Positions 8,144 to 41,000 of a DNA stretch of 64,000 bases are shown piece by piece. Positions within the stretch are counted from its first letter, which is position 1; each line of letters opens with the position of its first letter. A program made the position numbers and the translations under genes. The stretch is from Convolutriloba macropyga (Eukaryota): positions 18,848,001-18,912,000 of the forward strand of contig NC_134481.1 of assembly GCF_964194025.1 (NCBI RefSeq), given 5' to 3'. The notes below the pieces were generated by a model. It saw only the letters and a list, made by a program, of their open reading frames with translations. It had not been told where the DNA came from and searched no databases.

Positions 8144-8632
8144 TTAATAGCCGCACAGCGTTAGCTGGGGCTATTATTGGCCTTCTCTTGGTTTTTTTAC
8201 AATTCAAAGAATTTGAATTGTATTGGGGCGCTGTCTTTTTTTTGAGATCTGTTCACACATTTTCATGACTTTTGAAGTCAAATTGGAGTAGTGATTTTGG
8301 TCACGCCGAAACAGGAAGTGGAGTGAAAAAGCGAGTGGTTTTGCGGCGTGAAATTTTTTCGCTCCAAATTTAAAGTAGAGTGAGAAAACGGTGTTTGAAC
8401 AAAAATTCGCTTTCTCGCTAGTGGTTTTTTGTTCACATGCGACAATTTCACTTTGATTTTCACTGTTTTTTCGATTTTTTGGGTCGGTTTTTTTTCTAAA
8501 TGGTTTTCCCAATCCATTCATAGTCCGTTCTAGGTCTAGTTTTCTGTTAAGTCAATGAAAATTCTTTGAATTGTACGTCAGGACTTGTCCTGCTATGTTT
8601 TTTTATTTCGTCGTCAATCTGGCAGTTATGTT
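8144..8632 (+). mobile_element. Non-autonomous Helentron-associated (HINE/DINE-1-like) element, family A
   Basis: 5' TTAATAGCCGC...GGCTATT hairpin; internal module shared with ~19820-20370, ~37920-38470, ~44810-45190 and ~58360-58680; 3' ...TATGTTT end. Confidence 0.55.
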
Positions 8633-17000: not shown

Positions 17001-20000
17001 ATTGGTCTTCCAGATGTGCATTCTGGCTATGGCTTTGCAATCGGCAACATGGCCGCTTTTGACATGGACAACCCTGACAGCATTGTGTCTCCGGGTGGAG
17101 TGGGCTTTGACATCAATTGTGGCGTAAGACTTTTGAGGACCAACTTGTCAGAATCGGACGTCCGGGTTAGTTGGACATTCGTTTCTTAAATTCAAGTACA
17201 ATTTTTTTTCAAAAATAGGGTTCTTCAACTCGCGATACTTTTTTTTCAAAATTCATTAGTAACATTTTCGGTTTTTAAAATGATTTTTCATTATATTGGG
17301 ATCCCAAAATTTGAGGTGATATTTTTGGTGATAATGTATCAATTGGATGCCTGTTTACATGAGTTAACGTGAGCTCATGGATACATACATGTTTAGAAAT
17401 GGAAGTTTGGAAATTTACTAATAAGATCCATTTTGTTGATCTGGATAGTAAATCAATAGTCTACAATATTTATTCAGACTCATTTTTTGTAGTCTTTACT
17501 TTGAGAAATGTCTGGATTTATTTGAGCAAAATACCCTTTTGGAAATGTGGAATTTTTGTTAGCCCGTTAAAGAGCAACTGGCGCAGTCAATGTTCAACCA
17601 CATTCCAGTGGGTGTTGGAAGCAAAGGGGTGATCCCAATGGGTGCGAGGGATCTTGAGGAGGCACTGGAAATGGGCATGGACTGGAGTCTAAGGGAGGGA
17701 TATGTTTGGGCGGAGGACAAAGAGCACTGCGAGGAATATGGCAGGATGTTGCAGGCAGATTCATCCAAAGTCTCATTCAAGGTATGCAACAAATCTAATG
17801 GGCTCAAGTATCCGAAAGAAACTGTGGTTCAAGGGTTTTTTAATAGCCGCGCAGCGATAGCTGGGGCTATTATTGGCCTTCTCTTGGTTTTCTTTTACTT
17901 CGTCGTCAAGATTTTTGTTACGACCATATGACGTCACATCCACTTCAAATCTGCTTTTTGTTCATTTGTTCATGAAATTTCAGCTGAAGTGCGTGTGTGA
18001 CGTCATTTTCTGCTCTTAATCGAGCGAATTTTTTGTTCATTTGCGTGATTAAATTTTTGGTCACACGGGACTTACCTCACTCTCAAAAATGAATTCCTCA
18101 CTTTGAAATTGACTCTTATTTATTTTAATTCAAAGAGATAAGGTCAAGTGAATGCGTGTCACTCTAAATGAAGATTATTTGATCGCAGCTTTATAGAGCA
18201 GCAATTACTTATACAGATTTTTAATCAAAATATAACATTCTCAGCCTTCAATGAAAAGACTATTTTTTGGTCTGTCTTTTAATGTTTTTTTTGAGACTGC
18301 AGATCTACGAAGCTATTGCGGCTATTTTTGGCAATCTGCCAGCTATGTTTATTATATTTGCAAGCTTTATTATATTTATATTATATTATACTGTTTGTAT
18401 TAAGTTGTAAGCTGAGCGTCGCTATTTTACGGTGTTTGTGGTTTTTGAATTGAATTATATTGGGGCCCTGAAACCACCCCCCCCCCCCCACCTCACCCCC
18501 AAACCTAGCTACCCCACCTAGCCCCAATCTCCCTTTCACTCCGTTTACCTACCCGAGGCCCGACACCAACACCCCGAATTAAAAATTGATCTGTGAGTTT
18601 TTTAATAGCCGCAAAGCGATAGCTGAGGCTATTATTGGCGTTCCCTTGGTTTTTCTTTATTGCAACAGAATTTTTGTTTCAACCATATGACGTCACAATC
18701 AGTTCGAATCTGTTTTTTGTTCATTCGTTTTTGCAATTTTAACTGAATTGCGTGCGTGACGTCTTTTTCACTCTTAGTTGAGAGTTTTGTGCTTATTCTC
18801 CCGATTAAGTTTTAAGTCCAAGTGAGTTGCCTCACTCTCAAAAACGAATTTTTCGCTCTGATATCGATTTTTTTTTACTTCAGTTCAAGCAAATAAGGTC
18901 AAGTGAGTGCGTGTCTTTCTAATTGATGGTTATTTGAGTGCAGCTAATATAAGCAGCAATAAGTTAATAAGGTTCTTAGTCGCAATATAACATCTCAGCA
19001 TTTAATAAAACGAAATTTCTCTTTACGTCTGTTTTTTTTTTACTATCTTTTTGATACTTCAGATCTACGGAGCTTCCGTGGCTATTTTCTGGCTAATTTG
19101 AAGATTTTCCATCTACTTTGCTGATTTTTAGGCCATTCTGTTCCTAATGTTTCGTTTTACCGCTTTAAGTGGGATTTGTGGGGACGCTTATTACTTTAAG
19201 TAATTTGAAATATCAATTGATAAACGGTTGATGATATAATTTTTTTGTGGAAAAACGACAAAAAATTGAAAGTTTAAACTGTTTTTCTTTTTTTTTCTTT
19301 TTTAAGAGAGTTTCTTAGCCCATTAAGACTTGTATAGTTTTTTGAAATGATTTTCTTGTTTATCTGTCAATTGGTAAGTTTGTTTATTGAATGACAGTCA
19401 TCTTGTTGCGTTGTCTTTGCTAATAGTTGTTTTGTGGCCACAACTTCTAAATAAGTTTTTATCGGATGCTTTATCAGCTGTTCTGGTGAGATACGTTTCC
19501 ATTGTTCATTTTACTGTTTGTTTTGGTTAGTATTGGTGTTTTGGTAGTATGGTTAGTATTAAAGAGAAGGATTTGATTTATGTCAGTTAGCTTGGTCAAT
19601 TTCTTCCTTCGAGTCGTTTGCGGCATTCGTCCTATGTTTTCTTAAGATATATTAACACCTTTTCGTGATTTTAAAGTCAAAATGAAGTATGATTTTGCGG
19701 CGTGCATTTTTTTACTCTCGTTTTTAAGTAGAGCGAGAAAATGAAGTTCCGACGAAAGTGCTTTTTTGTTTAGTCAAGGAAAGTTCTTTGAGTTGTTTCA
19801 GGACTTGTCCTGCTATTTCTTTTTACAATTCAAAGAATTTGAATTGTATTGGGGCGCTGTCTTTTTTTCATGATTCTCATGATTTTTTAAGTGAAATTGG
19901 AATAGTGATTTTGGTCACGCCGAAACAGGAAAAGGAGCGAAAAAGTGAGTGGTTTTGCGGCGTGAATTTTTTTGCTCTAATTTTAAAGTAGAGTGCGAAA

Positions 20001-23000
20001 ATGGTGTTTGAACAAAAATTCGGTTTCTCGGTAGTGGTTTTTTGTTCACATGCGGCAATTTCACTCTGAGTTTTACTGTTTTTTCAATTTTTTGGATCGG
20101 ATTTATTTCTAAATGGTTTTCCCAATCCATACACAGCTCATTCTAGGCTTAGTTTTTTGTTTGAATTAAATTTTCATTTCTCGCTAGTGGTTTTTCTGTT
20201 CACATGCGGCATTTTGACATTGATTTTTTGTTTTTTTTTCTTATCTTTTGATCTGATTGTTTTAAAATGGTTTTCTCAATTCACTCATAGTCCATTCTAG
20301 GTCTACTTTTTTTGTTTAGTCAATGAAAATTCTTTGAATTGTACGTCAGGACTTGTCCTGCTATGTTTTTTTGTTTCGTCATCTGACGCTTTTTTCGATT
20401 TATATTTGTTCACACAGCGCAGCTGAAATCAAATTTTCTGAATGACTTCTTCCTCTCACTAACAGCATCTGCGTGCGTTACGTCATTTATCATTCTCTCC
20501 TGGTAAAAGCTTAGAGGTCATTTGCGTGATTAGATTATGATCATACCCGACTTACCTCACTCCATAAAATGACATTTGCACTTAATAACTTAAGTTTAAT
20601 TCGAATCAGTTTAAGGTTATTCAGCGGATTGAATTTTTACAAGTCGTATTATTTCTCCTCTACGTTTTTACAATTTATTTGAGCGGCGTCAATAAATTTG
20701 CGAATACAAGGGTTATATCAGTGATTTATGCCCATTGATAGAGATTTTTCCAATCATTCAGTTTGCTTGACTGTTTGTGAGAAACAATAACTTTTGAATG
20801 GTAATCATTACTTTCCATGCTAATTTTTTTCCTTTGGTTGATTTTGTTGTTGAATTTGGCAGCACCAAAAACCACTGCCATTTGCTGACAAAGACTAGAT
20901 AGCCGTCTGCTTTCAAAAACTCGTCAACATCTTATAATCTGTCATCAGTAGTGTCCATAATTTTTTTGAGTCAGTTTCCAATTTTGTACAAGATTACCCG
21001 TACCTTACCTCCAGAGTAGATCAGAGCTGGAACAGAGTAAATTCAGGAAAACTCTCAGAGCTGGATCAGAGTCTGATCAGGTCACTTTTTAGGCTTGACA
21101 GAGTAGCTCCAGAGTAGAAGTATGCGGTTACACTTGACAGAAGAACTCCCAGAGTAGCATTACTCTGGGCTATCCTTGACAGAGCTGGGCCCATAGCAGG
21201 CCTACTCTGGGACAACTCTTGACAGAGCTGGCCTACTCTGGGACAACTCTTGACAGAGCTGGCCTACTCTGGGACAAGTCTTGACAGAGCTAGCTCAGAG
21301 CGGGCCCACTCTGGGATAACTCTTGACAGAGCTGGCCCAGAGTAGGCCTACTCTGGGACAACACTTGACAGAGCTGGCTCAGAGCAGGCCTACACTGGAA
21401 CAACTCTTGACAGAGCTGGCTCAGAGCAGGCCTATTCTGGGACAACTCTTGACAGAGCTGGCTCAGAGCAGGCCTACACTGGGACAACTCTTGACAGAGC
21501 TGGCTCAGAGCAGGCATACTCTGGGACAACTCTTGACAGAGATGGCTCAGAGCAGGCCTACTCTGGGACAACTCTTGACAGAGCTGGCTCAGAGCAGGCC
21601 TACACTGGGACAACTCTTGACAGAGCTGGCTCAGAGCAGGCCTACTCTGGGACAACTCTTGACAGAGATGGCTCAGAGCAGGCCTACTCTGGGACAACTC
21701 TTGACAGAGCTGCCTCAAAACAGGCCTACTCTGGGACAATTCTTGACAGAGCAGGCCTACTCTGGGACAACTCTTGACAAAGCTGGCTTAAAGGAGGCCT
21801 ACAATGAGACTACTCTGAAGAGAAAGATCTCAGAGTACCACTACATTTCCCAGAGTAGCTACAGTTCTCTGGAGAATTTTTCTAGAACTTTATTGTGATA
21901 TAGCTTTTACAATAGTTGCAGAAAAGATAGGAATAGTTTGGAAAAGTTTTCGAAAAAAACGAAAGATATAGACTTCACATTCATCCAATATCTTTTACAG
22001 GTGAATTGGATTTTTCTTGTTCTGATGTGTTCTTTTAATTTTGCAGTCAACATTTTTGAAGTCATTTGCTTCATAAAAAGATAATGCGAGCTATTTTTAC
22101 CTAGATTTTCTCAGCTTAACAAAAAAAATGAAAGTAAAACTGCCATTGTACAAAATTATTAAATTTAGAAAAATGTTTTAACTATTCATAAAATAACGTC
22201 AGAACGCAATAAACATAATAAAATCAACAATAATGTCATCTTCATGAAATAAAATAGAACGAAAATCAATTGAAATATCAAGTTTATAACCAAACAACAT
22301 TGAGTCAAATTTGAACTATGTTTTTCACTCCATTAGAAACACATTACTATTTGTCATGAAATTCCTGTCTCGCCATTGCAGAGACAACAAGTGCTTTTGG
22401 ACGAGAATTGTTGAATGTTTTGTCAGTTTCCGTAAACACGTATAATTCTGTTTGATTGTCGAAAAAGATGTGCGCCCACATTTGAGGTAGAATTGCGTTT
22501 TAGGTAAAATTGTGACAACTTTTCTCCCAGAATGATCCCTGTGTCTCCTCCAGTGTTTCGGATTTTCAGAAAAGTTTTCAGAATAGAGAACTCTAAGGCC
22601 TTAAAGCCAGGAGAGAAAGAGACTCAAGTTCAAGTATGGATAATAGCTCTGTGGCCAAATAACCACGAGAGCCAGTTTTGATGGTGTTAGTCAAAAGCCT
22701 CAAAGCACGGAGAACTCTGCAGCCTTAAATTTAAAAAAATATATATAAAAATCTGTGGCCAAATAACCACGAGAGCCAGATTTTATGGTCTTATTTTAAA
22801 GCCTCAAAGCCCGGAGAACTCTGTAGACTTAAATTTAAAAATGAATTTCTGTGGCCAAATAACCACGAGAGTCAGCTTAGTTTTAAATGTCGCATGAAAG
22901 TAACTCTGAGGTCCTCAAACCAGGAAGGTCTCCTATTATTAACAACAGCTTTTAACACCAACTCTAATGCCGAAGAAGCAATGAGAGTCAGACCAAAACT

Positions 23001-26000
23001 TTGCTAGTGTTAAAAATAAAGAACTCTAAGGCCTTAAAGCCAGGAGAGAAAGACTCAAGTTCAGGTATGAATAATAGCTCTGTGGCCAAATAACCACAAC
23101 AGCCAGATTTTATGTTCTTATTTTAAAGCCTCAAAGCCCGGAAAACTCTGGAGACTTAAATTTAATTAAACATAAATTTCTGTGGCCAAATAACTACGAG
23201 AGTCAGCTTAGTTTTAGAGGTCGTATTGAAAGAAACTCTGAGGTCCTTAAACCAGTTAGGTCTCCGATTACCACCAACAGCTTTTAACACCAACTCTAAT
23301 GCCAAAAAAAGCAATGAGAGTCAGACGAAAATTCTACAATTGTTCAAAATAAAGAACTCTAAGGCATTAAAGCTAGGAGAGAAAGAGACTCAAGTTCAAG
23401 TATGGATAATAGCTCTGTGGCCAAATAACCACGAGAGCCAGTTTTGATGGTGTTAGTCAAAAGCCTCAAAGCCCAGAGAACTCTGCAGACTTAAATTTAA
23501 AAACTATATATAAAAATCTGTGGCCAAATAACCACGAGAGCCAGATTTTATGGTCTTATTTTAAAGCCTCAAAGCCCGGAGAACTCTGTAGACTTAAATT
23601 TAAAAATGAATTTCTGTGGCCAAATAACCACGAGAGTCAGCTTAGTTTTAAATGTCGCATGAAAGTAACTCTGAGGTCCTCAAACCAGGAAGGTCTCCTA
23701 TTATTAACAACAGCTTTTAACACCAACTCTAATGCCGAAGAAGCAATGAGAGTCAGACCAAAACTTTGCTAGTGTTAAAAATAAAGAACTCTAAGGCCTT
23801 AAAGCCAGGAGAGAAAGACTCAAGTTCAGGTATGAATAATAGCTCTGTGGCCAAATAACCACAACAGCCAGATTTTATGTTCTTATTTTAAAGCCTCAAA
23901 GCCCGGAGAACTCTGGAGACTTAAATTTAATTAAAAATAAATTTCTGTGGCCAAATAACTACGAGAGTCAGCTTAGCTTTAGAGGTCCTATTGAAAGAAA
24001 CTCTGAGGTCCTTAAACCAGTAAGGTCTCCGATTACCACCAACAGCTTTTAACACCAACTCTAATGCCAAAAAAGCAATGAGAGTCAGACGAAAACTCTA
24101 CAAGTGTTCAAAATAAAGAACTCTAAGGCATTAAAGCCAGGAGAGAAAGAGACTCAAGTTCAAGTATGGATAATAGCTCTGTGGCCAAATAACCACGAGA
24201 GCTAGTTTTGATGGTGTTAGTCAAAAGCCTCAAAGCCCGGAGAACTCTGCAGACTTAAATTTAAAAAATATATATAAAAATCTGTGGCCAAATAACCACG
24301 AGAGCCAGATTTTATGGTCTTATTTTAAAGCCTCAAAGCCCGGAGAACTCTGTAGACTTAAATTTAAAAATGAATTTCTGTGGCCAAATAACCACGAGAG
24401 TCAGCTTAGTTTTAAATGTCGCATGAAAGCAACTCTGAGGTCCTCAACCAGGAAGGTCTCCTATTATTAACAACAGCTTTTAACATCAACTCTAATGCCG
24501 AAGAAGCAATGAGAGTCAGACCAAAACTTTGCTAGTGTTAAAAATAAAGAACTCTAAGGCCTTAAAGCCAGGAGAGAAAGACTCAAGTTCAGGTATGAAT
24601 AATAGCTCTGTGGCCAAATAACCACAACAGCCAGATTTTATGTTCTTATTTTAAAGCCTCAAAGCCCGGAGAACTCTGGAGACTTAAATTTAATTAAAAA
24701 TAAATTTCTGTGGCCAAATAACTACGAGAGTCAGCTTATCTTTAGAGGTCGTATTGAAAGAAACTCTGAGGTCCTTAAACCAGTAAGGTCTCCGATTACC
24801 ACCAACAGCTTTTAACACCAACTCTAATGCCAAAAAAGCAATGAGAGTCAGACGAAAACTCTACCAGTGTTCAAAATAAAGAACTCTAAGGCATTAAAGC
24901 CAGGAGAGAAAGAGACTCAAGTTCAAGTATGGATAATAGCTCTGTGGCCAAATAACCACGAGAGCCAGTTTTGATGGTGTTAGTCAAAAGCCTCAAAGCC
25001 CGGAGAACTCTGCAGACTTAAATTTAAAAAATATATATATAAATCTGTGGCCAAATAACCACGAGAGCCAGATTTTATGGTCTTATTTTAAAGCCTCAAA
25101 GCCCGGAGAACTCTGTAGACTTAAATTTAAAAATGAATTTCTGTGGCCAAATAACCACGAGAGTCAGCTTAGTTTTAAATGTCGCATGAAAGTAACTCTG
25201 AGGTCCTTAAACCAGTAAGGTCTCCGATTACCACCAACAGCTTTTAACACCAACTTTAATGCCAAAAAAGCAATGAGAGTCAGACGAAAACTGTACAAGT
25301 GTTCAAAATAAAGAACTCTAAGGCATTAAAGCCAGGAGAGAAAGAGACTCAAATTCAGCTCTGAATAATAGCTCTGTGGCCAAATAACCACGAGAGCCAG
25401 ATTTTATGGTCTTATTTTAAAGCCTCAAAGCCCGGAGAACTCTGCAGACTTAAATTTAAATAAATATCACTTTCTGTGGCCAAATAACCACGAGAGCCAG
25501 ATTTTATGGTCTTATTTTAAAGCCTCAAAGACTGGAGAACTCTGAGACTTAAATTGAACTAAAAAAAATTTCTGTGGCCAAATAACCACGAGAGTAAGCT
25601 CAGTTTTAAATGTCGCATGAAATGAAAGCAACTCTGAGTCCCTTAAACCAGCAAGGTCTCCTATTATCAACAACAGCTTTTAACACCAACTCTAATGCCA
25701 AAGAAGCAATGAGACTCCTACGAAAACTTTGCTAGTGTTAAAAATAAAGAACTCTAAGGCCTTAAAGCCAGGAGAGAAAGGGACTCAAGTTCAGGTATGA
25801 ATAATACCTCTGTGGCCAAATAACCACGAGAGCCATATTTTAGAGTCTTATTTCAAAGCCCGGAGAACTCTGGAGACTTAAATTTAACTAAAAGTAAATT
25901 TCTGTGGCCAAATAACCACGAGAGTCAGCTTAGCGTTAAAGGTCGTATTGAAGGCAACTCTGAGGTCTCCAATTACTAACAACAGCTTTTAACACCAACT

Positions 26001-29000
26001 CTAATGCCAAAAAAGCAATGAGAGTGAGGCGAAAACTCTACAAGTGTTCAAAATAAAGAACTCTAAGGCCTTAAAGCCAGGAGAGAAAATGACACAAGTT
26101 CAGCTCTGAATCATAGCTCTGTGGCCAAATAACCACGAGAGCCAGATTTTATGGTCCTATTTTAAAGCCTCAAAGCCCAGAGAACTCTGCAGACTTAAAT
26201 TTAACTAAAAAAATTTCTGTGGCCAAATAGCCACGAGAGTCAGCTTAGCTTTGAAGGTCGTATTGAAAGCAACTCTGAAGTCCTTAAACCAGTAAGGTCG
26301 CCTATTACCACCAACAGCTTTTAACACCAACTCTAATGCCAAAAAAGCAATGAGAGTCAGACGAAAACTCTACCAGTGTTCAAAATAAAGAACTCTAAGG
26401 CATTAAAGCCAGGAGAGAAAGAGACTCAAGTTCAAGTATGGATAATAGCTCTGTGGCCAAATAGCCACGAGAGCCAGTTTTGATGGTGTTAGTCAAAAGC
26501 CTCAAAGCCCGGAGAACTCTGCAGACTTAAATTTAAAAAATATATATATAAATCTGTGGCCAAATAACCACGAGAGCCAGATTTTATGGTCTTATTTTAA
26601 AGCCTCAAAGCCCGGAGAACTCTGTAGACTTAAATTTAAAAATGAATTTCTGTGGCCAAATAACCACGAGAGTCAGCTTAGTTTTAAATGTCGCATGAAA
26701 GTAACTCTGAGGTCCTTAAACCAGTAAGGTCTCCGATTACCACCAACAGCTTTTAACACCAACTTTAATGCCAAAAAAGCAATGAGAGTCAGACGAAAAC
26801 TGTACAAGTGTTCAAAATAAAGAACTCTAAGGCATTAAAGCCAGGAGAGAAAGAGACTCAAATTCAGCTCTGAATAATAGCTCTGTGGCCAAATAACCAC
26901 GAGAGCCAGATTTTATGGTCTTATTTTAAAGCCTCAAAGCCCGGAGAACTCTGCAGACTTAAATTTAAATAAATATCACTTTCTGTGGCCAAATAACCAC
27001 GAGAGCCAGATTTTATGGTCTTATTTTAAAGCCTCAAAGACTGGAGAACTCTGAGACTTAAATTGAACTAAAAAAAATTTCTGTGGCCAAATAACCACGA
27101 GAGTAAGCTCAGTTTTAAATGTCGCATGAAATGAAAGCAACTCTGAGTCCCTTAAACCAGCAAGGTCTCCTATTATCAACAACAGCTTTTAACACCAACT
27201 CTAATGCCAAAGAAGCAATGAGACTCCTACGAAAACTTTGCTAGTGTTAAAAATAAAGAACTCTAAGGCCTTAAAGCCAGGAGAGAAAGGGACTCAAGTT
27301 CAGGTATGAATAATACCTCTGTGGCCAAATAACCACGAGAGCCATATTTTAGAGTCTTATTTCAAAGCCCGGAGAACTCTGGAGACTTAAATTTAACTAA
27401 AAGTAAATTTCTGTGGCCAAATAACCACGAGAGTCAGCTTAGCGTTAAAGGTCGTATTGAAGGCAACTCTGAGGTCTCCAATTACTAACAACAGCTTTTA
27501 ACACCAACTCTAATGCCAAAAAAGCAATGAGAGTGAGGCGAAAACTCTACAAGTGTTCAAAATAAAGAACTCTAAGGCCTTAAAGCCAGGAGAGAAAATG
27601 ACACAAGTTCAGCTCTGAATCATAGCTCTGTGGCCAAATAACCACGAGAGCCAGATTTTATGGTCCTATTTTAAAGCCTCAAAGCCCAGAGAACTCTGCA
27701 GACTTAAATTTAACTAAAAAAATTTCTGTGGCCAAATAGCCACGAGAGTCAGCTTAGCTTTGAAGGTCGTATTGAAAGCAACTCTGAAGTCCTTAAACCA
27801 GTAAGGTCGCCTATTATTAACAACAGCTTTTAACACCAACTATAATGCCGAAGAAGCAATGAGAGTCAGACGAAAACTTTGTAGTGTTAAAAATAAAGAA
27901 CTCCAAGGCCTTAAAGCCAGGAGAGAAAGAGACTCAAGTTCAGCTCTGAATAATAGCTCTGTGGCCAGATAACCACGAGAGCCAGTTTTGATGGTCTTAG
28001 TCAAAAGCCTCAAAGCCCGGAGAACTCTGGAGACCTAAATGTAACTAAAAATAAATTTCTGTGGCCAATTGATAGTCAGACCAAAACTTTCCTGGTGATC
28101 AACATTGGGAATTTTAAGGCTTCAAAGCCAGGAGAGCTATGGTGACTGAGTCCGGGGTTTGGATAACAACTCTGTGGCCAAATAAAGGCAAGAAACAAAT
28201 TTGAAAGTCTAGGGTTTTAAAAACAAGAGAATTCTAGGTTTATATTTTTATCAAATAGCAAAAACCTCAATTGAAGTACAAAATAGTGAATTATTCAATT
28301 GAATTGTCTCAAGTTTAAAAAATCATTACAAAATAACAGAATTGGAAACTGGAAAACAACTTTAAACGTTTAAGCTTGGTTGGTCAGTTTTTGATTTTCA
28401 AGAGTGATCAAAGGAAGTGCACAGTTTTATGGCAAGCGAATCATCTGAGTTTTGCATCTTGACACGAAAAACTTTTTGAAGGCTGCTAGCACTAACAAGA
28501 TTTTCGGTCTTCGTATTCTGCAAACGATACAGAATACCTTTGACGGGACCAATTTCCTCAACAATTTTATGCATTTCGATGACTGCGTTGGTCCTCAATA
28601 TGAACGGCTCCTCTGGTAAGGAAACGAAGTACATAATTTGCCCGAATTTCACTTCACCTTCGACGGAAAAAGACACAAAACTGTTACAATCACCAGACAT
28701 TGGTGCGCGAGAGTAGCATGGAGAATCAAAATAGACGTTATTCACTTTCTGTCTATTGAAAAATGTGGCGTCAAAATAGAGATCTCGGCCTTGCTTTAGA
28801 GACACTGTCTCCTTCATAGCATGATGATAACTTGAATCATCTTCAATATCTTGTCCCATTAGGTTGAGCCAATGATTCTTAAGAAAATCGTTTTTTAATT
28901 TTGTGTCATATAGCCAATGGATTTGTAATAGTCTACGGCATATTATTTCAACTTCATGATGAGAACCAGAAAAATTTTCGCCCAGTACTCTATTAGCGGA

Positions 29001-32000
29001 CTCAAAACTCATTGCTGAGCAAGTAAAGAGTGGACCAAACCTTTTAACTTGGTGGCTGAGATGGCGAAGACAATGAGTGTTGATTGTTTCAATTTTTTCG
29101 TTTCCTCCGAAAAAGTTTACGATTTTTCTACAGAAACAATCCAGAAGTTTTTCAGCCTGTTCAACATTTGCACTTTCACTGGACTCGAGAAGAAGTCTCA
29201 CGCCAAAGACAAAATTAAGCAACTCTTCGTAAATGTTTGGCGAAAGTAACTCATAGAAAAGAACAGGTGCTATATAGAACATCCAGTTAAAAAATTCATT
29301 GGCTTTGAATTGCCCCATTTCCTCTAAACATCGAATTTTCCGCGAATAAGCAATCATCTCTCTCGGACACGCTAATTGCTTCACTGATTCATTTAGAGAA
29401 ATACGTGAAGAAAAATCAAGTAAAGTACGAACACGCTTTAGTATCTCCGGGAAAACTCCAAGTAGCACGCAGTGCATGTAGTCAATGGGAGCCGCCAAGG
29501 GTAAGCCTTCTATTATCAGCGAAAAGGCACTTCGTCCTTTCACTCCCACAACATTGGCCACTGTATCTTTACCAAACGACTCAGCGTATTTCACATAATT
29601 GTCGTGGATGTTAGGTTCGCGTATTTTCCCTTCCTGAAGATACGGATAATACGCATGAGTACGACCAATAGTAACACCTTCTGCTTCACAGTAATGGCAC
29701 CCAAAAAAACCATTGAATTTAAACATGTTGAGAATGTGACCTTTGGCACATAAATCAGCAATGAGAAGTATACATTTGAACTTCACAAAAATCGAGGTCT
29801 TATTGCAAACGGGAACTTCAACTTCCGAGACCAACTCTCCGCGCAACAGGGGAACGATTAGATCCCAATCGGGGGTTTCGGCACCAACATGTAAAGCTGC
29901 TAAGACAATATTTTTGCGAGCTGTTCGAAGAATAGGAGGAAGATCAACAATTTGCATCCAAATTGGCCAAAGCTCTTTCTTGAAAGATGATTTTTTAATA
30001 TTTACACCATCAGTAGATAGAATCAAACTTAATTGGACTGAATTGTTTCTAATTTTTGGTATTGGAGCTGTATTTGAATTTAAATCGCTTTCTGGATATC
30101 GTTCTCTGTAGGAGGCATAGTTGAAAATTTGGTCAAAATTCCTGCATACGATATCACCAAGTTGGAAGCGAAAATTCAATACACAGAAACAACTATTCTC
30201 AACTTTTATCAAAGCCCTCACGGAAGACTCAAAGTTTGACTTCATCTTTTTAATGAAAGATGAACCACAGGGTAAACAGTTATCACTCGGAAGTAGGGCT
30301 TTCACTGTAGAAAAAACTAGCGTAGAACCTTCGTCAGACAAATGTAGTTTAGAACACAGCATTTCAAGCAGTTTACATGCATCAGAAACTTCAACAACAC
30401 TGCCAGCAAAAAGTTTTTCACTAATAGCATCTTCTTCATTGTTTATTAATGACATACTGTCTTGAGCGCAAATTGAAGATACTGAGCAGTCAAGTACACA
30501 GGGGAATTTAGCACAAGGAGAAGACACTCGCGGTACCTCTAAAATGAAGCTGCGAGAATCATCACTCAACAATGCGCATTGTTCTACATTCTGAATTGGG
30601 GCAACGAAACTGTCAACATTTGTTTCAAGAACTTCAACAAAAGGGTCTGCAAAAGTTGCATCATCAGTTTTGTCACCTGCAATTTCCGTTGAATCAAAAT
30701 CTGTAAAACTTATGGGAGCAAGAATTTTAGGTTTGGCATATAAATCGTTACTGAGTCTCACAAGATGATTTCGACGGAACCTCTGTTTTTTCCGCTTCGG
30801 TTGTGCACATAGCTCATTACTTTCAATCAGAGCTTTTAAGCAAAATTCCTCTATAATAATTGTCAAAAGTTCTGAGAAAATCAAATTTGCATTTTCCGTA
30901 ATTATTTCGCAAGTTGCACAACGACATTGATTTTGTTCAAAGAAGTCGGTGCCGTACTTCACTAAAATTTCCTGCCCACAAAAAATGCGTTGCTTTGTTT
31001 TCAGTTGCACGATACCAGTTATACTGGAAAAGTCGTAGTCGCAATTTGGCGAACAGTCCGAATTCACAAATCTTATAGGCCCAACAAGTAATAAGTTTTC
31101 TCCGGTTCTTTCCGACCGCATAACTGACCAGTCTGTGACACCATCTGGAATTGGTCTCACAAAACCAATTGGTTTGCCGCGAAGAACAGTGTTGACAGCT
31201 AGAGCCTCTTGTCCGCAATACATTAAACGATACCCATTATACTTATCGTAAGCGATGTGAAAATCAGGTTCCAACGACCCATACGCATGGCAAAGTTTTT
31301 CATAAGTGTCCTTCCAAACATTTTCGGTTGATATTCTCTTATTGAAAATTCGCTCAGACAAAGGCCTAACTAATTCTTCAGCTGATCTGAATTTTGTTTC
31401 AACGTATCGTTTTACCGCAAACAAATCGCATTGTGCCAAAATTGGCCAGTCAACTTTCTTTGACAGCATATCTTAAAAAAATTTTAAAATGATGACTCTC
31501 TCAGACCAATGTAAAATTCAATGTCAAGAAATAATAGTTTTTTTTATGAACAATCCTGTAAAAAATGAGAACAACAAATGAGATTGCATATGAGATCGAA
31601 ATCCCATATTGAGGCACAAATCATACGAAAGCAAAATCTTACAAAAGCAAGCGAAAACGTAATACAATTGAAAACTTACCAAAGCAACATTAACAAAGAT
31701 GTTACGACCGGCGACGTTATAGAATAAACAACGCTAGCAATAAATAACAACTATATTTAATATACAGAAGCAAACGAGACAACTAATGATATTGCACATT
31801 GGAAAGAAAGCACATGTTTAACGCAAATTAGACGAAAATTTTTCAGTTTCCATATAGAAAACGTAACAGAAAGCATTCGGAGAAACAATAACAAAGGTAA
31901 TATGTCTTTAAATTTCCACAAAACTTGTTAGGGCCGGCGACGTTATAGTATAAACAACGCTAGCAGTAAAATACATTACTGTATTTAATACACAGAAGCA

Positions 32001-35000
32001 AACAATACAACTAATGATATAGCACATTGGGTGGAAAGCACATGTTTAACGCAAATTAGACAAAAATTACTTAGCGTCCATATAGAAAATCTAATAGAAA
32101 GCATTCGGAGAAACAATTACAAAGGTAATATGTCCATCGACTTTAAAGTTTCCACAAACCTTGTTAGGTCTGGCAACGTTACAGAATAAACAACGCTAGC
32201 AGTAAAATAAATAACTGTATTTAACACACAGAACCAAACGAGACAGCTAATGATATTGCACATTGGGTGGAAAGCACATGTTTAACGCAAATTTGACAAA
32301 ATCTATTTAGTGTCCATATAGAAAACGTAACAGAAAACTTTCAGAGCAACAATAACAAAGGTAATTTGTCCATCGACTTTAAAGTTTCCAAAAAACTTGT
32401 TAAAAAAATTTATCACATACAGAAGCAGGAGAATGAGCGCCAATACTAAACTTTTGAAAGCAAGATACAATGAGCAAGTTAGCAGAAATGGAAATCAATC
32501 ACAACAGTTTTCTTCAATTTTGACCGGAGTCGTTTCCTGCGCTTCTTCGCTCAACAGAACGCAACTCATTTCCCAGATTGTTTAGACTTGTCTTCGCCAA
32601 CTCATACATTCCCAGCCACTTATCGTCGTATTTTCGTCGGAACAAATCTAAACAATAAAAAACTAAAAATTATCAAAGACTGAAAATTACCAAAGACTAA
32701 AAAAATTACCAAAGACTGAGTGCTATGTACAGATTTACTTTTTAGCAAAAACTGAACGCGACAGGATTGAGAATTTAGGGACAAAAAAACAAGCAAAACT
32801 CAACCTTTCAAATGAGTTTTCCGAACAGGTGAAAAGTCTTCCCGTGAGTTTCCTGGCCTCGACCTTTTGGGAGACAGTAGATGCTCCATAATCTCATCTT
32901 TTGTCCAAAGCTTTTTAGTAGCATTTCGCGCCAGAGCTTGAGGCGTAGTTCCTTCAACTTTCATTAGATCTTGACCTTGACTCGGACCTTTGAGTATAAC
33001 CAACGCCTCGTCTCCCTCCTCAGGTTTTTTTGGCTCCGGCCAGAGAACTCCCATCTTTGCAATTTGGGAGCTCTGAAATTACACAAAAAAAATACAATTC
33101 TAAAGTTAGAGATCATCAAAAGCTGAGGAGATAGAAATATTGCAGAAAAAAATAGTATATCAAAGTGTAAACAAACCAAGAACTTCAGTTGATTCGAAAA
33201 CTGCTGCAACTGATTGTAATTTCGGTTCGATAAACCCTGTACACTGTTATTGAGCTCCTTGATGGTGTTATTGAGCAAGGCCAGGGTGTCATTCTGTTTT
33301 TGCGTAGCCTCTAACTGCTTTAACAAAAAGGGGTTCAGAAGACTATTGGTGTTTGACTCTTCAATTTGGTCAGGCCTGATAGTTTTACCTCTTCGAACTT
33401 TCTTAGGACCGGGAGTAGAACTGGCTCGCTTGGCCTGAGTTCCCTCAGCTGCAGCCTAAATCAACAATTGTGAAAGCAGACCTCAGAAAAGACCAGCAGA
33501 CCTCCATTTATCTTGAACAGAACTCCAAGCTTCAAATTTTTTAACAGAACTTCAACCAAAAAAAAACTAACAATCAGATAGAAATTTGAAAATAACAGAC
33601 CTCGGATTCGCCAGGTGGAATTCCACTGAAATCCAAGTTTAGCGAATCCTCCAGTATACCCATTGCTTGATCATCGTTTTCGGCCTCACCTAAGATGCGG
33701 TTGACATCATCACCATCAATTATAGGGTATTCACTCTCAGCAACAACTTGATTAGACTCTAAGAAATGCTGAGATGGAACAAAATCAAGTTTTTTGCTAA
33801 CAGTTGGGTTTCCTTGACTCAAAAGTACTTCATTAACGTTCTCATGCAAAGTTAACTCCGGGTCATCGGGAATTTCAAGAGTTGGTTCATAATCCGGATC
33901 ATTCATATTTTCTTGGATTTTGAGACACATTTTCTTTTCTGCCATTTTTACATAACCCTCGTGGCCCATTCTTTTGACCAGAGATCGCCAGATATATGTT
34001 CCGTTTTCAGGGTTCACAACATCAAGTTTCACGTCCACGTAGCTGCCTTGCTAAAGCAGAGATACACTAATTGTTAAGACCTCTATAAAAAAAGCGCTAA
34101 AAGAAGTTCTCTTAACTGGCAGGTCAATTTTAAGGGGCAACGAAAGTTCTCGGTGTCAAGGAAGGTTTATTTTCGTTTAACAATGTAGTAATGACATGAA
34201 ATCACTCAAGACAAAGATGAACTCTGTGCTGTTTAACGATGGATTGATGGAAAAACTGGTAGAAAAACTTACTTGAACTTCCAGGCGCTCAGCAAGACCT
34301 AGTTTGATACTGGTGTTCAAAGCGCGCATTGAGCCACAATGTTTATCACTGAACAAAAGAAGCCACCATCGGTTTTTGAGACTTTCATTAGCAATTTTGT
34401 TAGCAGCCTCCACTTGATCTCTATCAGCTTGTGATAGACCTTTTTTTTCACGTGTTGGTCTTTCAGGAACTACCTAAGCATTTTAAAAGTTCGAATACTA
34501 CATACTGAGGGTTGCTCTTTTGCGTAACTGTCAACAATTTTCCAATTTTATTCAGTTGATGCTAAAGAACAAACATCTCGATATGATTGAAAAAGTAAAT
34601 TTTCAAAGCCTTGAACTTACAATGTTTGGAGTAGTTGTGTTAGATTGACTGGTAACGTCTTCCAGAGGCAAAAAATTGGTTACCTCTTTCACATTCTGAA
34701 GCGTAAGTGCCCCTTTCGAGAAACTGATTACATTTTGTCCTGACTTTTTGTTCACACGGCCTGCTTTGATTGACATTTCAAAGCAAGTTTTTTAAACAGA
34801 ATTGTCTGAAAACAGGTTTGAAGTGTGACAATAGAACTTCTATTTCAAATGAAACTTCGTTACTTAAACGCTGTATATAGTTCACAAATTTCCAAAACAA
34901 TTAAAGATTTGAAAAACTCTAGGTAAGCAAAAGAACACCGATAACGAAAGAATTACCACGTGAGAAAAATTTTAAGGCAAAGCAGCCAGCCAATAGAATC

Positions 35001-38000
35001 TCATTCAAATCCTTAGGAATAAAAGCAAACAACAGTTTGAGTCCGAACTTGACTGTTGTCAAAAAACCTTTACAGCTTATAAAAAATGCTGATTTCTGTT
35101 CACGAAGTTCTTACATGAGAACAATAGAAACCAAAACATGCAAAAAAATTGCTCAAAGAAACGAAAATTTGAGTTCAATTTGTGTTCAATCAAGAATAAT
35201 TTTTTCAAATCACTACCTAATATAGCCGGCAGATAGCCGGCAAATAGCCACAAGTGATTCTCAATCACGATTGGAATTAAATGCTTAGAAAACAAAGAAA
35301 AAGTTTGATTTTAGCACAAAAATTTTTTCTAAGTGAAATTTATGTTGATGTCGTTTCGCAGTTGAACAAACTCCTCGTTCATAATGATAGGCTACAAGGT
35401 ATAGTATCAGTATCAATAAGCATTAGAGATGGAAGCTAAAGCCTATAAGAACAAAGTTCGAGCCCAAGCTTCGTCAAAAACCATTCAGTTGAAACAAGTC
35501 GAACATGAAAATCTTGGTAATTTAAGTAAAACGAAAAACCAAACCCAAACGTAAAAAATTTCAAAAAAGGAGAGCGCCTAGATAGTAGCCACTGAGAGGT
35601 TGACTGCTCTTATTTAAAAAATCAAACTGACCGAAATTGATTGAGAGCAACCATTCTAATTAAAACAAAAATCAAAATGATATATTCCAAGAACATATAA
35701 CGATTGAATTTATCATCAGCTATACAAACAATCAAACAATCAAGTAGCAATCAATGTTTGTTTTTATGCTTGTTGTAAATCAAGTTGTTAGCTATATTGA
35801 CCATAAGATTGGTAAGTTTATGATAGTTTTTGGGTTGTAGATGACATTTTTCATGTTCAGGTTCATCAAGAAAATGGCATCTCGACACAAAGCGATTGGG
35901 ATAATAATATGACTTGAAGTTTTCTCTTAGTTGTTTGTTGAAATCATTTATCTTAACAGAATTGCAATCTTTCCTCGAAAACAACGATACAATACGCAAT
36001 TGGTACGTATTTTCAAAGGGCAAGTGCTCTATCAAATCTCTATAGTATTTGAATATAACTTCATGAGTGACGTGGTTGAAATCATTGCCGCCTAACATTA
36101 TTACAATGTTTCTGAATTGAATAATTCGTGGGTAAAGCTGAATAAGATGAGCTGCTCTTCTTCCACCTTGTGATAACACCTCAATGGGCAGATTGCAAAT
36201 GTTAGCATTCTCGTTTTTTGCACCAAAAGCCCTGACCACGTTACTGTCACCCACAAAAACTACTTTCTCTATCAGTTTCAAATTTTTCACGTCATGGCTG
36301 ATGTAATACATGTAGTCCAACATTGTTTGCACTTCATCATGTCGATCATCGTCATAAAAAATGAAATCGAATCCATTCCGTTTCACAATGTATTGAGGAG
36401 TATTCATTACAGATATATATCTAAAAAAGTTTGAAAATGCATACCACCACTTTGCAGTGTAAATTGGGATATCAATAGGAATTAAATCTTGGAATCAATG
36501 GAAAAAGCAATAATAGGGAACATCGAAAATTTTACTTGGAATCAATTGTCTGCTCTTAAGAACAGCCCAAAGAAATATAGCCGACAGATTGCCGGAGTAG
36601 CTGCGAAAGAATAGACTTTCGTGCGGTATAAAAGAGAGAGAAACATATACAGATCTACATTGAAAAAAATCGACGCCGCTCGAAAAGCTGGGTAAAACAT
36701 TCAGGGATAAATTAATTGTTAAATTTCGTTTTGCAGAAACCTTTCATTGATGATCATTACTCTATGGAAAATTGTTTCAAACAAAAACTAGGCCTAAAAA
36801 AACTATGAATGGATGAAGAAACGCTTTTGGAAATCCGATCCCAAACATCGAAAAATAAGTAAAAATCAGAGTGAAATTGCAGCATGTAAACAAAAAACCA
36901 CTAAAGATAAAATGATTATGTCACTTGAATGGTATTTTTTTTATCTGCTCATGTGAACAAAGTCTTACGTTTGATATTCAAGGCTCGGAAAACAAGAAAA
37001 AAAATAATTCAAAGCTCTACAGGTTACCTAACTTAAATTACCTACCGTATTTGAAAAAATGAAACTTCGCATTTTTTACTACTATCGACGGAGCGTTGAT
37101 TGGATAAACCTCAGAAACAGCTATAGAAGCAGAACAATTATTGACGCATATTAAGTCTTTTCAAATTGAACCCCCAAAAATACAGTGACAATAAAAATTA
37201 ACAAGGAGGCTCGGTTAATGTGCGTACGCACATAATGTTCCGAACCCGCTCATCCATTTTCTTGACTTAATTGTCTACCAAATGATGAACAGATACAAAA
37301 CTAACATTCAAATCGTTCAATAAAAAACCAATGGAATAACAGAATTATATGCTAGAGGGCCGATGAAATTTGCTTTTAATACGACTACTAGAAAAAACAA
37401 TAGAAAAATTAAATAACAAACATTAATCATAAAAAGTAACTACTTAGCATAACTACTTAAAAAATTAAATCAAATTCAAAATCGCATCAGATAAAACCAA
37501 AACAAGCAAATTTTTGTTCAAACATTATCTAGGAAATCATATATGGTCATTGTATGACTACCAAGAATTCACACAAATCATATATGACCTAGTATTATTA
37601 ACAAGAATCATATTTGACCTAGTACGAAATCAAAGAAAGTATGATCGTTGACCCGGGAAGATGCATCAAGTCTCATTTCACTGGGGACAGATAAAATTTT
37701 TATAAATCAGACTTAAAACAGACTGACGGCATGTATAAGTTTGGCTTGTTTTCTACCAAAGTTTCTACACATTTATGGTTGAATGAGGCAAAGCATTTTT
37801 CTAATTCTTAAACAATTTTTTAACACACTTTCAGTGCAGATTATTTGTGCATTATTGAATAACGCAGTTTTATAATGTCCTCTTACTGCAGAAAAACAAA
37901 AGATAGAAATTAAGTTTAAAAAAACATAGCAGGACATTTTCTGACGTACAATTCAAATAGTTTTCATTGTCTAAACAGAAAACGACTGATAACGGACTAT

Positions 38001-41000
38001 GAGTGAATTGGGAAAACCCTTTCTAAAAAAACCAGATGAAAAAAATTAAAAAGAAAAAAAATTGGCGTGAAAATGCCGCATGTGAACAAAAAACAAATAG
38101 CAAGAAATAAAAATTTGGTTCAAACAAAAAACTAGGCCTAGAATGAGCTATTAATGGATTGGGAAAACCATTTAGAAAAAATACTCGATCCAAAAAACTG
38201 AAATGTGTCAAGATCAAAGTGAAATTGCCGCATGTGAAAAAAAACTACTAGCGAGAAAACGAACTTTTGTTCAAACACCGTTTTCCAACTCTACTTGAAA
38301 TTTAGAGCGAAAAAAGTTCACGCCGCAAAACCACTCGCTTTTTCGCTCCATTTCCTGTGCCAGCGTGACCAAAACCACTTACCCATATTGACCTCAAAAA
38401 TACTGAAAATTTGTGGACAGATCTTAAAAAAATACACTGCCCCAATACAATTCAAATTCTTTGAATTGTAAAAAAAGCCAAGAGCACCGCAATATAGCTC
38501 CACTCAGCTTACAATTTTGCAGCTATAATATGAAAAAAAATCAACTAATGTTGGAACTTCTCTCGAACGACAGGCGATGCAATTTAATTGGAGGGCCGTA
38601 GCCTAGATAAGTTTTTCTTTATTGGTGTAGAAGAAATGTACCTCTAGAAGAACCAAGATCTTTACAATAATTACTGCGAACTTCTTTCGAGAGCAACTAA
38701 TTAGGATCAAGGGATCGTTTCCGTTTGTGCCCTTAGGACGTTATGCAACCCACCGTTACAGGGCACGTGTTATTACATAGACAAAGATAATGTAAGAGAA
38801 TGCTATGTGTGTTTAGGGGGTGCAAAAAGTTGCACCCATTGAACGGGGGCACAAATGGAAAAGATCCCATTCAAGTCATTTTGTTAAATGAAAATAAAAT
38901 TGAAGCACCAAAAGTAAAAACGATTATATTAAACTAAACTACTTGAGGTTTAAGCACTACTTGGCATCATGATCCCGATGCTCCTTCTTGATTTATTAAT
39001 TAAGAAATCCAACTTCGCCCTTCTGAGAACTCAATTTCTTCATTTTGGATTGCATGCAACTATTGGATTGAAATGAAGAATTATATCGTAAGAATAAAAC
39101 AATCTTGCTTCTCTTGATCTTTCTTTCCTTCTTCCAATTCAGTTCTGTTAATCTTCAATTCCTTTTGCTTCTCCTAATTCGCTGACATCTGTTCCTACGA
39201 AAACTGTAATGACTTTATCGTTCCATCGTAATTTCTGATTTGCTTAGTGAGGTTGCAGTATACGCACGTGCCCCTCTCCCAGTATGGCATGTTGATCCTC
39301 ACTTAGAACTCCCAGATAGTCCAGTTATCAATCTGTCTTGTCTCCAGAAACAAAACACCTATCGAAAGCAAGATGAAAGCAAATACAAAAGAACAAAATA
39401 ATCGATAAATATCAACATCGCACATATAACATAACCGAATTACGTCGGGCGAATTGCTCTCAAACGACCAGTTGGCTATGTCAGTAACTAGCCACGGTTC
39501 AGTGAGGCTAGCTTTACTTTAATTGAAGGGGCGTGAGGTGAGCGCATCGGGGGGATAGTGCACCGGGGGGGGGGGGGGTGGTGCACCAGGGGGGGGGGGG
39601 GGGGTTGTGGGTGGGGGCTTGGGGTGGGGAGTGGCAACGGTGAGAGGGGGTCCTTTGGCCGCACCGGGCCCTTGCAGCCTGAATGATGCGCAGGGTTCAG
39701 GATTTGTGTGGGGGGAGTGAGGGGGGCTGATGTTGGGGGGGGGGGGGTTGTTGTGGGTGGGTCGACCTCTAATAACCGCCTTACACATCATGAGTATCAG
39801 TCTCCAAAACAGTTTCTGTGAATCGCATACTTCGAGACTAGTGGACTGAAAGACTCTAGGAGAACTTAATGTCTACCGAGTGCTGCCTGTTCATCCCATT
39901 TTTGAGAATAAAAATTCAAATGGGTCAGACGAAAAATTGGTCAAGCAAAAACTCAAAGTAAAAAAGACCTACATGACTAATATAATTGCTACAAACTTCG
40001 TTTAAGAGCAATTAACAATCATAAAAGCCAAACAATATCATAATCAAATTTCTAAACCAAAAAAAATATGAGAAAACAGTTTCGAAAAAGCCGCACCTGA
40101 ACAAAAAATTTCGCTCGTTTACAGAAAGCTCGTTTTTCCACACAATTTTTCGCTCTCTCGAAAAGTAGTTATGAATAAATTTTGCATCTGACAAGCAGAT
40201 CAATTGAACAATAGCAGCCGAAAACGCAAACAGTCATAAAATTGGGGAAACTAGACACACTTAAAAAATAGCAAGAGTTGTAAATTGGGGAAGCTAAAAT
40301 ATTTTTAGCAGAATGAGAGAAGAGCAAAACTAGCCTAAAGTAAAAATGATTTCACGCAGATTAACTAGCTGAAAGGCCCTAAGAGATCTTAATGCCCGCG
40401 CAGCGCTTTCTGTTAATCCTGTTTTTTTCAGGACCAAAAGTCAAATGGGTCAGACAAGAATTCGGTGAAGCAAAAGATCGCATTCAAAAGAACAACAGGA
40501 CTAATGTAATTGCGGAAAATTTTGTTTGAGAGCAATTAATGAAAAATAGCCGGCAGATTGCCGGAAAATACTCGCCGTTGACGCGCTTGATGCACACCGG
40601 GATTGAAACAGAAAAAAAAGAAAAGATGAATTGACCGAAATTTTTTTCAATTTTTTTAGTGTTAAAAAGTGTTCTAATTCGACCTGCAGTTTCAGTTGGA
40701 TTCTAAAACTATACTTAATTCAGCTTCTAAACTGAAAGCTTAATAAAGTTAATACCAATGTCAGCTAGCAAACACTCTAATGAACTTTGATAACTTAATT
40801 GGCAATGACTTAACGACCGGGCTCAATTGGTTTATCCCGTCTCTTTTTATTTCGCTCTTTTGACCTTGACTGTATCTACTATCTTGCGTTTTTCATTGAG
40901 TGAATCGATTTAAAAACCATTCCGTTGAAACAGTGAGTGAGGTAAGTCAGTAGTCAAACGTAAAAGTTGTGACTTTTGTAAAACGAGAAACGTGATCAAA

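Follow-up and report, generated by a model that had tools for sequence, protein, structure and literature searches.

Can a transposon carry a writer of chromatin marks within its own transposase? Transposons are usually viewed as targets, not writers, of such marks. The question is raised by a locus of the acoel Convolutriloba macropyga (assembly GCF_964194025.1, contig NC_134481.1, positions 18,848,001 to 18,912,000 of the forward strand; this whole stretch of 64,000 nucleotides is called the window here), in which one long reading frame joins a SET domain to a DDE transposase. We hold it to be very likely, as a structural and evolutionary statement, that a KMT5-like SET module has been joined to a RAG1-like DDE transposase and kept in an old transposon clade. 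The overall reading, that the fusion encodes the transposase of a large and recently active cut-and-paste transposon of the CMC group (CACTA/Mirage/Chapaev), a relative of Transib and RAG1, is probable. A writer-like domain lies inside the transposase polypeptide, and it is of the KMT5 type, whose H4K20 mark is tied to double-strand break (DSB) repair and heterochromatin.

Architecture of the fusion protein

The minus strand of the window holds, at 28398–31469, a single stop-free open reading frame (ORF) of 1023 amino acids (aa), with the stop codon inside these coordinates. Its start methionine is aligned with the start of homologues that are ~45% identical, and a chance origin of a 1023-codon open frame is ruled out because the G+C content of the genome is ~37%. 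The product can be read as one polypeptide with three parts: a Suv4-20/KMT5-type SET module, a disordered linker that opens with a motif resembling a nuclear localization signal (NLS), and a DDE core. The features of the ORF are as follows, with the evidence for each in brackets (pLDDT, predicted local distance difference test).

28398–31469, minus strand: SET-transposase fusion ORF, 1023 aa (ORF reading and residue check)
30885–31469, minus strand: KMT5/Suv4-20-like module, aa 1–195, with helical N-terminal domain aa 8–64, SET core aa 70–178 and post-SET cysteine cluster C139/C182/C184/C187 (AlphaFold2, Foldseek, PDB sequence search, conservation)
31059–31064, minus strand: N136-S137, 'NH' changed to 'NS' (alignment)
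30771–30800, minus strand: basic NLS-like motif, aa 224–233 (alignment and residue check)
30426–30818, minus strand: acidic/Ser-rich linker, aa 218–348, predicted to be disordered (pLDDT and variable alignment)
28401–30422, minus strand: CMC-type (DUF1258/Transposase_21) DDE transposase, aa 350–1023 (Pfam, conserved columns, Foldseek)
30009–30011 (D487), 29754–29756 (D572), 29688–29699 (C591/C594), 29061–29075 (H799/H803) and 29001–29003 (E823), minus strand: transposase residues (conserved columns)

The initial annotation, made from the letters of the window, had named a series of diagnostic motifs, and each lies where it was said to lie: DWS115VM, FVN136S137DC139SPN, KY172G, C182-x-C184-x2-C187, the basic stretch at aa 224–233, STD487G, IAD572L and SFE823S. 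The N-terminal part, called a SET domain there, matches the Pfam SET profile over its cut-off (E 2.1e-5, 25.3 bits, cut-off 22.4). The best Pfam transposase match is DUF1258 (E 3.9e-13, 49.9 bits, cut-off 33.1), and Transposase_21, at 23.7 bits, stays under its cut-off of 28.6, a profile that some relatives do exceed (e.g., P0155 at 42 bits). In a full-length structural model (pLDDT 78.8), aa 218–348 are the sole disordered part; a Foldseek search with this model matches the front part to SUV420H and the transposase part to the RAG1 core and amphioxus BbRAGL over ~600 columns at E 1e-11.

A Suv4-20-type SET module

The SET module was studied in an alignment of the first 215–260 residues of 32 fusion-family members and in an AlphaFold2 model of aa 1–215 of the window protein, which has a mean pLDDT of 90.9. 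Foldseek comparison of this model with the PDB gives SUV420H1/H2 structures as all of the best 16 matches, over ~230 columns with template-modelling (TM) scores of 0.6–0.7, and SET enzymes other than these appear only from E 1e-6 or worse. Because ~230 columns are aligned, the match takes in the helical N-terminal domain and the post-SET zinc cluster along with the SET core, and the assignment to the Suv4-20/KMT5 type made in the initial annotation is borne out. A PDB sequence search places KMT5B/KMT5C (SUV420H1/H2) first, at E ~1e-8 over aa 109–193, and the next SET family, KMT2C, follows at E 0.014.

Residues were compared among 12 fusion-family members, 13 distant SET-transposase fusions and 15 cellular KMT5-like proteins. 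The cellular-type protein P0193 matches KMT5B at 6e-37 across the whole catalytic domain. The fusion retains nearly all KMT5-conserved residues, namely G102, S115, G130-P131, F134, N136, D138, C139, P141-N142, G165, E167, Y172, F177, C182, C184 and C187. Within the fusion family, the G78-G79-Y80 motif, Y172, N136, S115 and the four zinc cysteines show little or no variation; the zinc ligands C139/C182/C184/C187 are invariant and align with cysteines kept in all 15 cellular proteins. The Ser of the Suv4-20-specific 'D-F-S' motif (S115) is found in 12/12 family members, 13/13 distant fusions and 15/15 cellular proteins, and Southall et al. reportedly located this residue, in 2014, in the lysine channel.

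At one position the family clearly departs from its cellular relatives. In 12/12 family members, Ser137 takes the place of the His of the SET 'NH' motif (N136 and Y172 are kept), and the same position is His in all 15 cellular proteins and in 9/13 distant fusions, so the NH to NS change is derived and has become fixed in the fusion family. In SUV39H1, mutation of this His is said to abolish activity (Rea et al., in 2000), and the NS change may weaken or abolish catalysis by the SET module. A rival explanation is built on this change: the SET module would be catalytically dead and kept as a binder of the histone tail or nucleosome that tethers the transposase or chooses its targets and writes no mark. 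It can appeal to the fixed NS set against NH in cellular KMT5 and most distant fusions, to the fact that the domain is nonetheless under purifying selection, and to the SUV420H1-nucleosome PDB entries 8t9f and 8t9h, whose titles speak of 'catalytic and non-catalytic mechanisms'. We consider it rather unlikely, since the (near-)invariance of Y172, N136, S115, G78-G79-Y80 and the four zinc cysteines exceeds the apparent need of pure binding. A further point against it is that, in SET enzymes, the NH-motif His touches the cofactor chiefly through its backbone; there are also active PR/SET enzymes without that His. The chances of a catalytically active SET module are evenly poised, and H4K20 as its substrate is a tentative proposal, somewhat short of even chances.

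A RAG1-like transposase core

The SET module is followed by a linker (aa 218–348) that has a pLDDT of <50 and is variable in alignment. The basic stretch at aa 224–233 opens a family-conserved motif, K-RR-x-RGRELVE-x-FN, and would be suited to nuclear localization. The reading frame is open across the unconserved linker in 16/16 full-length relatives.

Two alignments, one of 17 full-length sequences and a wider one of 33, were used for the transposase. D487, D572, C591-x2-C594, H799-x3-H803 and E823 are invariant in the 17 sequences and are invariant or at least 90% conserved in the 33, and H666 is likewise (near-)invariant in both. The set of C-x2-C and H-x3-H motifs with the DDE residues, against which the window protein was tested, is the one defined for CMC transposases in PMC12730594. 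Pfam matches in the wider alignment comprise SET in 30/33 sequences, DUF1258 in 29/33 and Transposase_21 in 15/33. The initial annotation had called the transposase intact, and this agrees with the conserved D487, D572 and E823, the presence of both CMC-specific motifs, C-x2-C and H-x3-H, and the RAG1-like fold.

Copies, termini and mobility

A 90% cluster around the window protein contains 18 variants on at least 12 contigs, mostly broken; four are intact, 1023 aa long and on different contigs of one ENA assembly. Copies L002–L004 are mutually ~99% identical over >10 kb of coding and non-coding DNA and 95–96% identical to the window, and copy L001 matches window positions 20996–36716 at 95.8%. 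Five copies stop at one common base, ...GGTAAGGTACGGG(T), beyond which lie five unrelated flanks. In addition, fusion lineages that have diverged from the window copy number dozens in one sample. The following parts of the element lie in the window.

20996–21043, no strand assigned: 3' terminal inverted repeat, outermost ...TACGGG(T), of the element on the minus strand (five copies, five flanks)
21161–21756, no strand assigned: subterminal 42-bp tandem repeats, ~14.7 copies, inverted beside the 5' repeat of L001 too (repeat analysis)
22580–28190, no strand assigned: internal tandem array downstream of the fusion ORF, units of ~100/332/432 bp in a higher-order arrangement (in all close copies, length differs)
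31700–32402, no strand assigned: three 236-bp tandem repeats directly upstream of the fusion ORF (in all close copies)

The element ends read (A)CCCGTACC...GGTACGGG(T), i.e., CCCGTA...TACGGG, in all five copies seen, and are neither CACTA nor CA..TG. In L001, a 48-bp terminal inverted repeat (87.5% identity) has its two ends 12.5 kb apart, with 42-bp subterminal repeats inverted at both ends; L001 is thus 12.5 kb end to end, and other copies have >10 kb of additional satellite. The label 'CACTA' used in the initial annotation is therefore retained at the level of the CMC superfamily, and it has to be dropped for the termini and for the best Pfam match, which is the nematode DUF1258 family. With the ends taken as CCC...GGG, L001 is flanked by TG/TG and the window copy by TA/TA, which would amount to a target-site duplication of 2 bp as in Mirage; a duplication of 3 bp (AAT/AAT) would suit the window copy but not L001. 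Both ends are seen in just these two copies, and for the window copy it is uncertain whether the two ends belong together. CMC target-site duplications are 2–5 bp long, with 2 bp in Mirage and 3 bp in CACTA and Chapaev. BLAST around the diverged loci L006–L008 revealed no terminal inverted repeats, although short ones would escape the method. The 5' terminus was not reached in L002–L004 or in the extended L005, where the 5' parts are >10 kb of 174/181-bp satellite.

A host origin of the copies has to be weighed here. The ORF could have been domesticated, as SETMAR was, into a host gene or gene family that is no longer mobile; an intact ORF under purifying selection and a window copy without a contiguous 5' terminus are what such a gene would offer. 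Against it stand the 18 variants, mostly broken with four intact, the ~99% identity that extends into non-coding DNA, the common terminus with unrelated flanks, the terminal inverted and subterminal repeats of L001 and the dozens of diverged lineages in the same sample. SETMAR-type domestication is marked by a single-copy locus, lost ends and lost chemistry, and here the locus is multi-copy, the ends are common and the DDE triad is intact. Domestication is accordingly very improbable, and the existence of several intact and nearly identical copies, alike in terminus and different in flanks, upholds the view of the initial annotation that the fusion belongs to a mobile element.

Homologues, age and selection

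A word-indexed protein search found 64 relatives of the window protein, among which the named one is from the acoel Convolutriloba macropyga. Sixteen of the 64 align end to end at 44–47% identity (one at 37%), and the rest are fragments, N- or C-terminal, that stem from broken copies. When 1.84 billion representatives were searched with a profile built on the SET module, 1872 matches were obtained. They include a distant tier of ~1000-aa proteins with an N-terminal SET and a DUF1258/Transposase_21 core (P0155, P0168, P0170, P0188, P0216 and P0152) at 24–30% identity; a further tier consists of cellular KMT5-like proteins, aligned to the C-terminal half of the SET profile only. An Atlas search returned Transposase_21/DUF1258/Plavaka clusters without SET. 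This distribution bears on the possibility of an accidental chimera (made by a transposon that inserted into the KMT5 gene of a host) or of an error in assembly. Both domains are found in the same arrangement in 16 full-length proteins (~45% identity) as well as in more distant relatives (24–30%), the fusion is carried by several independent contigs and by short-read contigs of four runs, and its SET is not close to cellular KMT5; we count this explanation as already refuted, with a negligible probability left to it.

A maximum-likelihood tree sets 30 transposase-linked SETs apart from 19 KMT5-like SETs of cellular type, with split support of 100/98 and a branch length of 1.25; the tree is unrooted and lacks an outgroup, so that a position as sister to KMT5 and one nested in KMT5 are not separable in it. 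Because the transposase-linked SETs stand apart from cellular KMT5 on a long, supported branch, the tree points to one old acquisition of SET followed by co-evolution with the transposase rather than to a recent host capture. The dN/dS ratios (non-synonymous to synonymous substitution rates) between the window copy and L002–L004 are 0.27–0.31 overall, 0.30–0.40 for SET and 0.16–0.24 for the transposase core, calculated from small numbers of substitutions (for SET, 7 synonymous and 9 non-synonymous ones). At the sequence level, they indicate that all parts of the ORF are under purifying selection.

The long branch also gives room for a change of substrate, and the SET might be active on a non-histone protein, either the transposase itself or a host repair or silencing factor. 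SETMAR offers a precedent in that it is regulated by automethylation, according to the title of PMC2566874. Suv4-20-specific features are kept in the fusion (the N-terminal helical domain, S115 and the post-SET cluster), which speaks against such a change, and we judge a non-histone substrate improbable.

Two observations concern related entries in public data. The AlphaFold DB cluster A0A7E5A209, a 727-aa UniProt 'SET domain-containing protein', matches the transposase part (query residues 226–889), and SET-linked CMC transposases may thus sit unrecognized in UniProt already. P0208 has a KMT5-like SET N-terminal to RVT_1, and P0213 is near-identical and SET-only (Nasonia vitripennis, XP_031777417.1); both group with cellular-type KMT5 in the tree, outside the transposase-linked clade. 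In P0208, a KMT5-like SET may have become linked to a mobile element a second time and independently.

The window copy and its second gene

Upstream of the fusion ORF, the window carries further parts of the element and possible pieces of its 5' end.

32514–36716, minus strand: upstream part of the element common to other copies (homology to L001; the contiguous match ends at 36716)
33574–34038, minus strand: 154-aa ORF, an exon-like piece of a second gene (37%-identical counterpart in L007 5693–6541)
35751–36407, minus strand: 218-aa ORF with GDS...GGND-like motifs, called an SGNH hydrolase in the initial annotation (in all close copies)
42287–42658, minus strand: 5' subterminal fragment homologous to L001 4815–5198, with a 145-bp overlap with the content of 36573–36716 (homology)
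54428–54813, minus strand: 5' terminal-repeat piece, 96.9% identical to L001 3610–3993 (expected orientation, 18 kb away)

L007 is a diverged locus from the same sample, with a SET-transposase 47% identical to that of the window. Because the counterpart of the 154-aa ORF also lies upstream of the fusion gene there, the comparison suggests that a conserved second gene travels with the fusion, as in CACTA elements. No Pfam match was obtained for the 154-aa ORF or for the 218-aa ORF (at E 0.01 for the latter), and the 218-aa ORF was not found in the diverged loci L006–L008. Upstream of the 218-aa ORF, alternating 174-bp and 181-bp arrays occupy >9 kb in L005 (105–9446) and are present in L002–L004 (1–4762); the 174-bp array amounts to only 660 bp in L001 and is absent from the window, and satellite content is very variable among copies.

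The pieces at 42287–42658 and 54428–54813 lie in the order and orientation expected of this copy's 5' end, and the TA (or AAT) flanks at 54428–54813 match those at 20995. The window copy is either a ~33.8-kb element (20996–54813) that contains foreign DNA or a 5'-truncated or rearranged copy. The matching flanks favour the former, which is weakened by an aldehyde dehydrogenase gene and the 145-bp duplicated segment inside it. Runs of N occupy 53883–54082 and 54183–54427, and the apparent end of homology at 54428 is set by masking because the second run adjoins it. A 289-aa 'ORF' at 53638–54507 was rejected as an artefact of these runs.

The aldehyde dehydrogenase region (50981–52390, minus strand), which lies, along with other repeats, between the fusion gene and the distant 5' terminal piece, consists of three adjoining pieces in different frames that match Pfam Aldedh positions 69–313, 336–412 and 413–461. 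It is intronless, has apparent frameshifts and falls in a stretch of raised G+C content (0.445); it may be a pseudogene of the host, a segment that the element captured or foreign DNA. An unrelated dispersed repeat of ~550 bp occurs at no fewer than six sites of the window: 19820–20372 and 37918–38474 (inverted to each other), 8166–8612, 41016–41143, 44825–45214 and 58355–58677.

Weighing the evidence for an active element

Several points count against the reading of the fusion as the working transposase of a chromatin-modifying element. The first is Ser137 at the NH position, as set out above, and others are the two-copy basis of the target-site duplication, the missing root of the SET tree and the few substitutions behind the dN/dS values. 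The 5' end of the window copy is not contiguous: homology ends at 36716 and the terminal piece lies at 54428–54813, with the aldehyde dehydrogenase between them. The window copy itself may therefore be unable to move despite its intact ORF, though it would be able to supply protein. Four public runs that contain window sequence have flat depth over the ORF, spacers and satellites and look like DNA; searches for runs yielded these four DNA-like runs and no RNA run. For the distant fusion P0168, three public runs hold contigs of 3.3–3.7 kb that are little longer than the ORF and transcript-like, and these contigs hint at possible transcripts, as an indirect sign for that distant fusion only.

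A possible role in chromatin

The SET module would couple transposition to chromatin. It would most likely bind the H4 tail or the nucleosome and, close to the donor or target site, methylate H4K20 or a neighbouring lysine. Local H4K20me2 could then recruit 53BP1 and end-joining repair, so that the excision break would be mended, or the element integrated, more readily. Such an end-joining mechanism is plausible because KMT5B/C make H4K20me2/3 and 53BP1 reads H4K20me2. The SET domain of SETMAR and histone reading and modification by RAG may serve as analogies for a coupling of this kind. The broader proposal is that an old, animal-wide CMC/RAG1-like clade carries its own histone-mark writer, used for H4K20 methylation at the excision or integration site, for steering of integration or for setting the chromatin state of the element; it is conceivable, and we give it limited credence.

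Within a lineage related to RAG1, selection has preserved the SET domain over deep divergence. The intact natural copies, the window ORF among them, provide material for testing a coupling between transposition and histone methylation and an active counterpart to SETMAR. If the SET is active, the protein would be a compact natural model for directing a histone mark to DNA breaks. If the proposal is true, the element would be the first natural, still-mobile, single-chain 'transposase plus chromatin writer', and a parallel, in the sister lineage of RAG1, to the histone-reading and histone-modifying parts of the RAG recombinase.

Comparison with known systems

Other chromatin modifiers borne by transposons include the VANDAL anti-silencers and fungal TET/JBP. 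Neither an in-frame fusion of a KMT5-type SET with a CMC transposase nor an animal element of this kind was described in the literature searched, which did not extend to Repbase Reports. SET-carrying transposons are already known, and the in-frame KMT5-type SET-CMC fusion is a new variation on them.

The closest parallel in architecture is primate SETMAR (Metnase), which, like the window fusion, has SET N-terminal to a DDE-type transposase in one polypeptide, and for which a link to DSB repair has been proposed. SETMAR is a single-copy domesticated host gene in which a SUV39-type SET that pre-existed as a host gene is joined to a crippled Tc1/mariner-type Hsmar1 transposase. In contrast, the window fusion combines a KMT5/Suv4-20-type SET with a CMC/RAG1-like transposase that has an intact DDE triad, is multi-copy, has terminal repeats and belongs to a whole old clade.

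Active DNA transposons that encode SET are a second point of reference. HarbingerS and MuDR elements of Phytophthora, along with some Helitrons, have acquired SET genes, as summarized in PMC12730594, which cites Kojima and Jurka (Repbase Reports 2014), and in red-algal Plavaka (EnSpm superfamily) the accessory gene PAG2 combines a DNA methylase with SET (bioRxiv 10.1101/2025.02.11.637652). Plavaka is in the same broad CMC/EnSpm group as the window element. As described in these citing texts, SET is a captured or accessory gene in all of these elements, with oomycetes and red algae as hosts, and in Plavaka the accessory gene is separate from the transposase; in the window element, SET is in frame with the transposase, is specifically KMT5-like and has an animal host.

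Cellular KMT5B/KMT5C (SUV420H1/H2, with yeast Set9) are H4K20 di- and trimethyltransferases that have the fold of the window module in common, including the helical N-terminal domain and post-SET cluster, and both sides keep S115 of 'DFS', N136, Y172, G-P-x-x-F-x-N and C-x-C-x2-C. The window SET differs from them in being only ~20% identical, in its separate clade, in NS for NH and in the transposase that replaces the long C-terminal heterochromatin-targeting region. With CMC transposases (EnSpm/CACTA, Mirage and Chapaev), Transib and RAG1, the window element has in common DUF1258/Transposase_21, a fold like that of RAG1, subterminal repeats, an upstream second gene and perhaps a short target duplication; it is set apart from the CMC families by its CCCGTA...TACGGG ends, its very large internal satellites and its N-terminal SET, which the texts searched do not report for these families.

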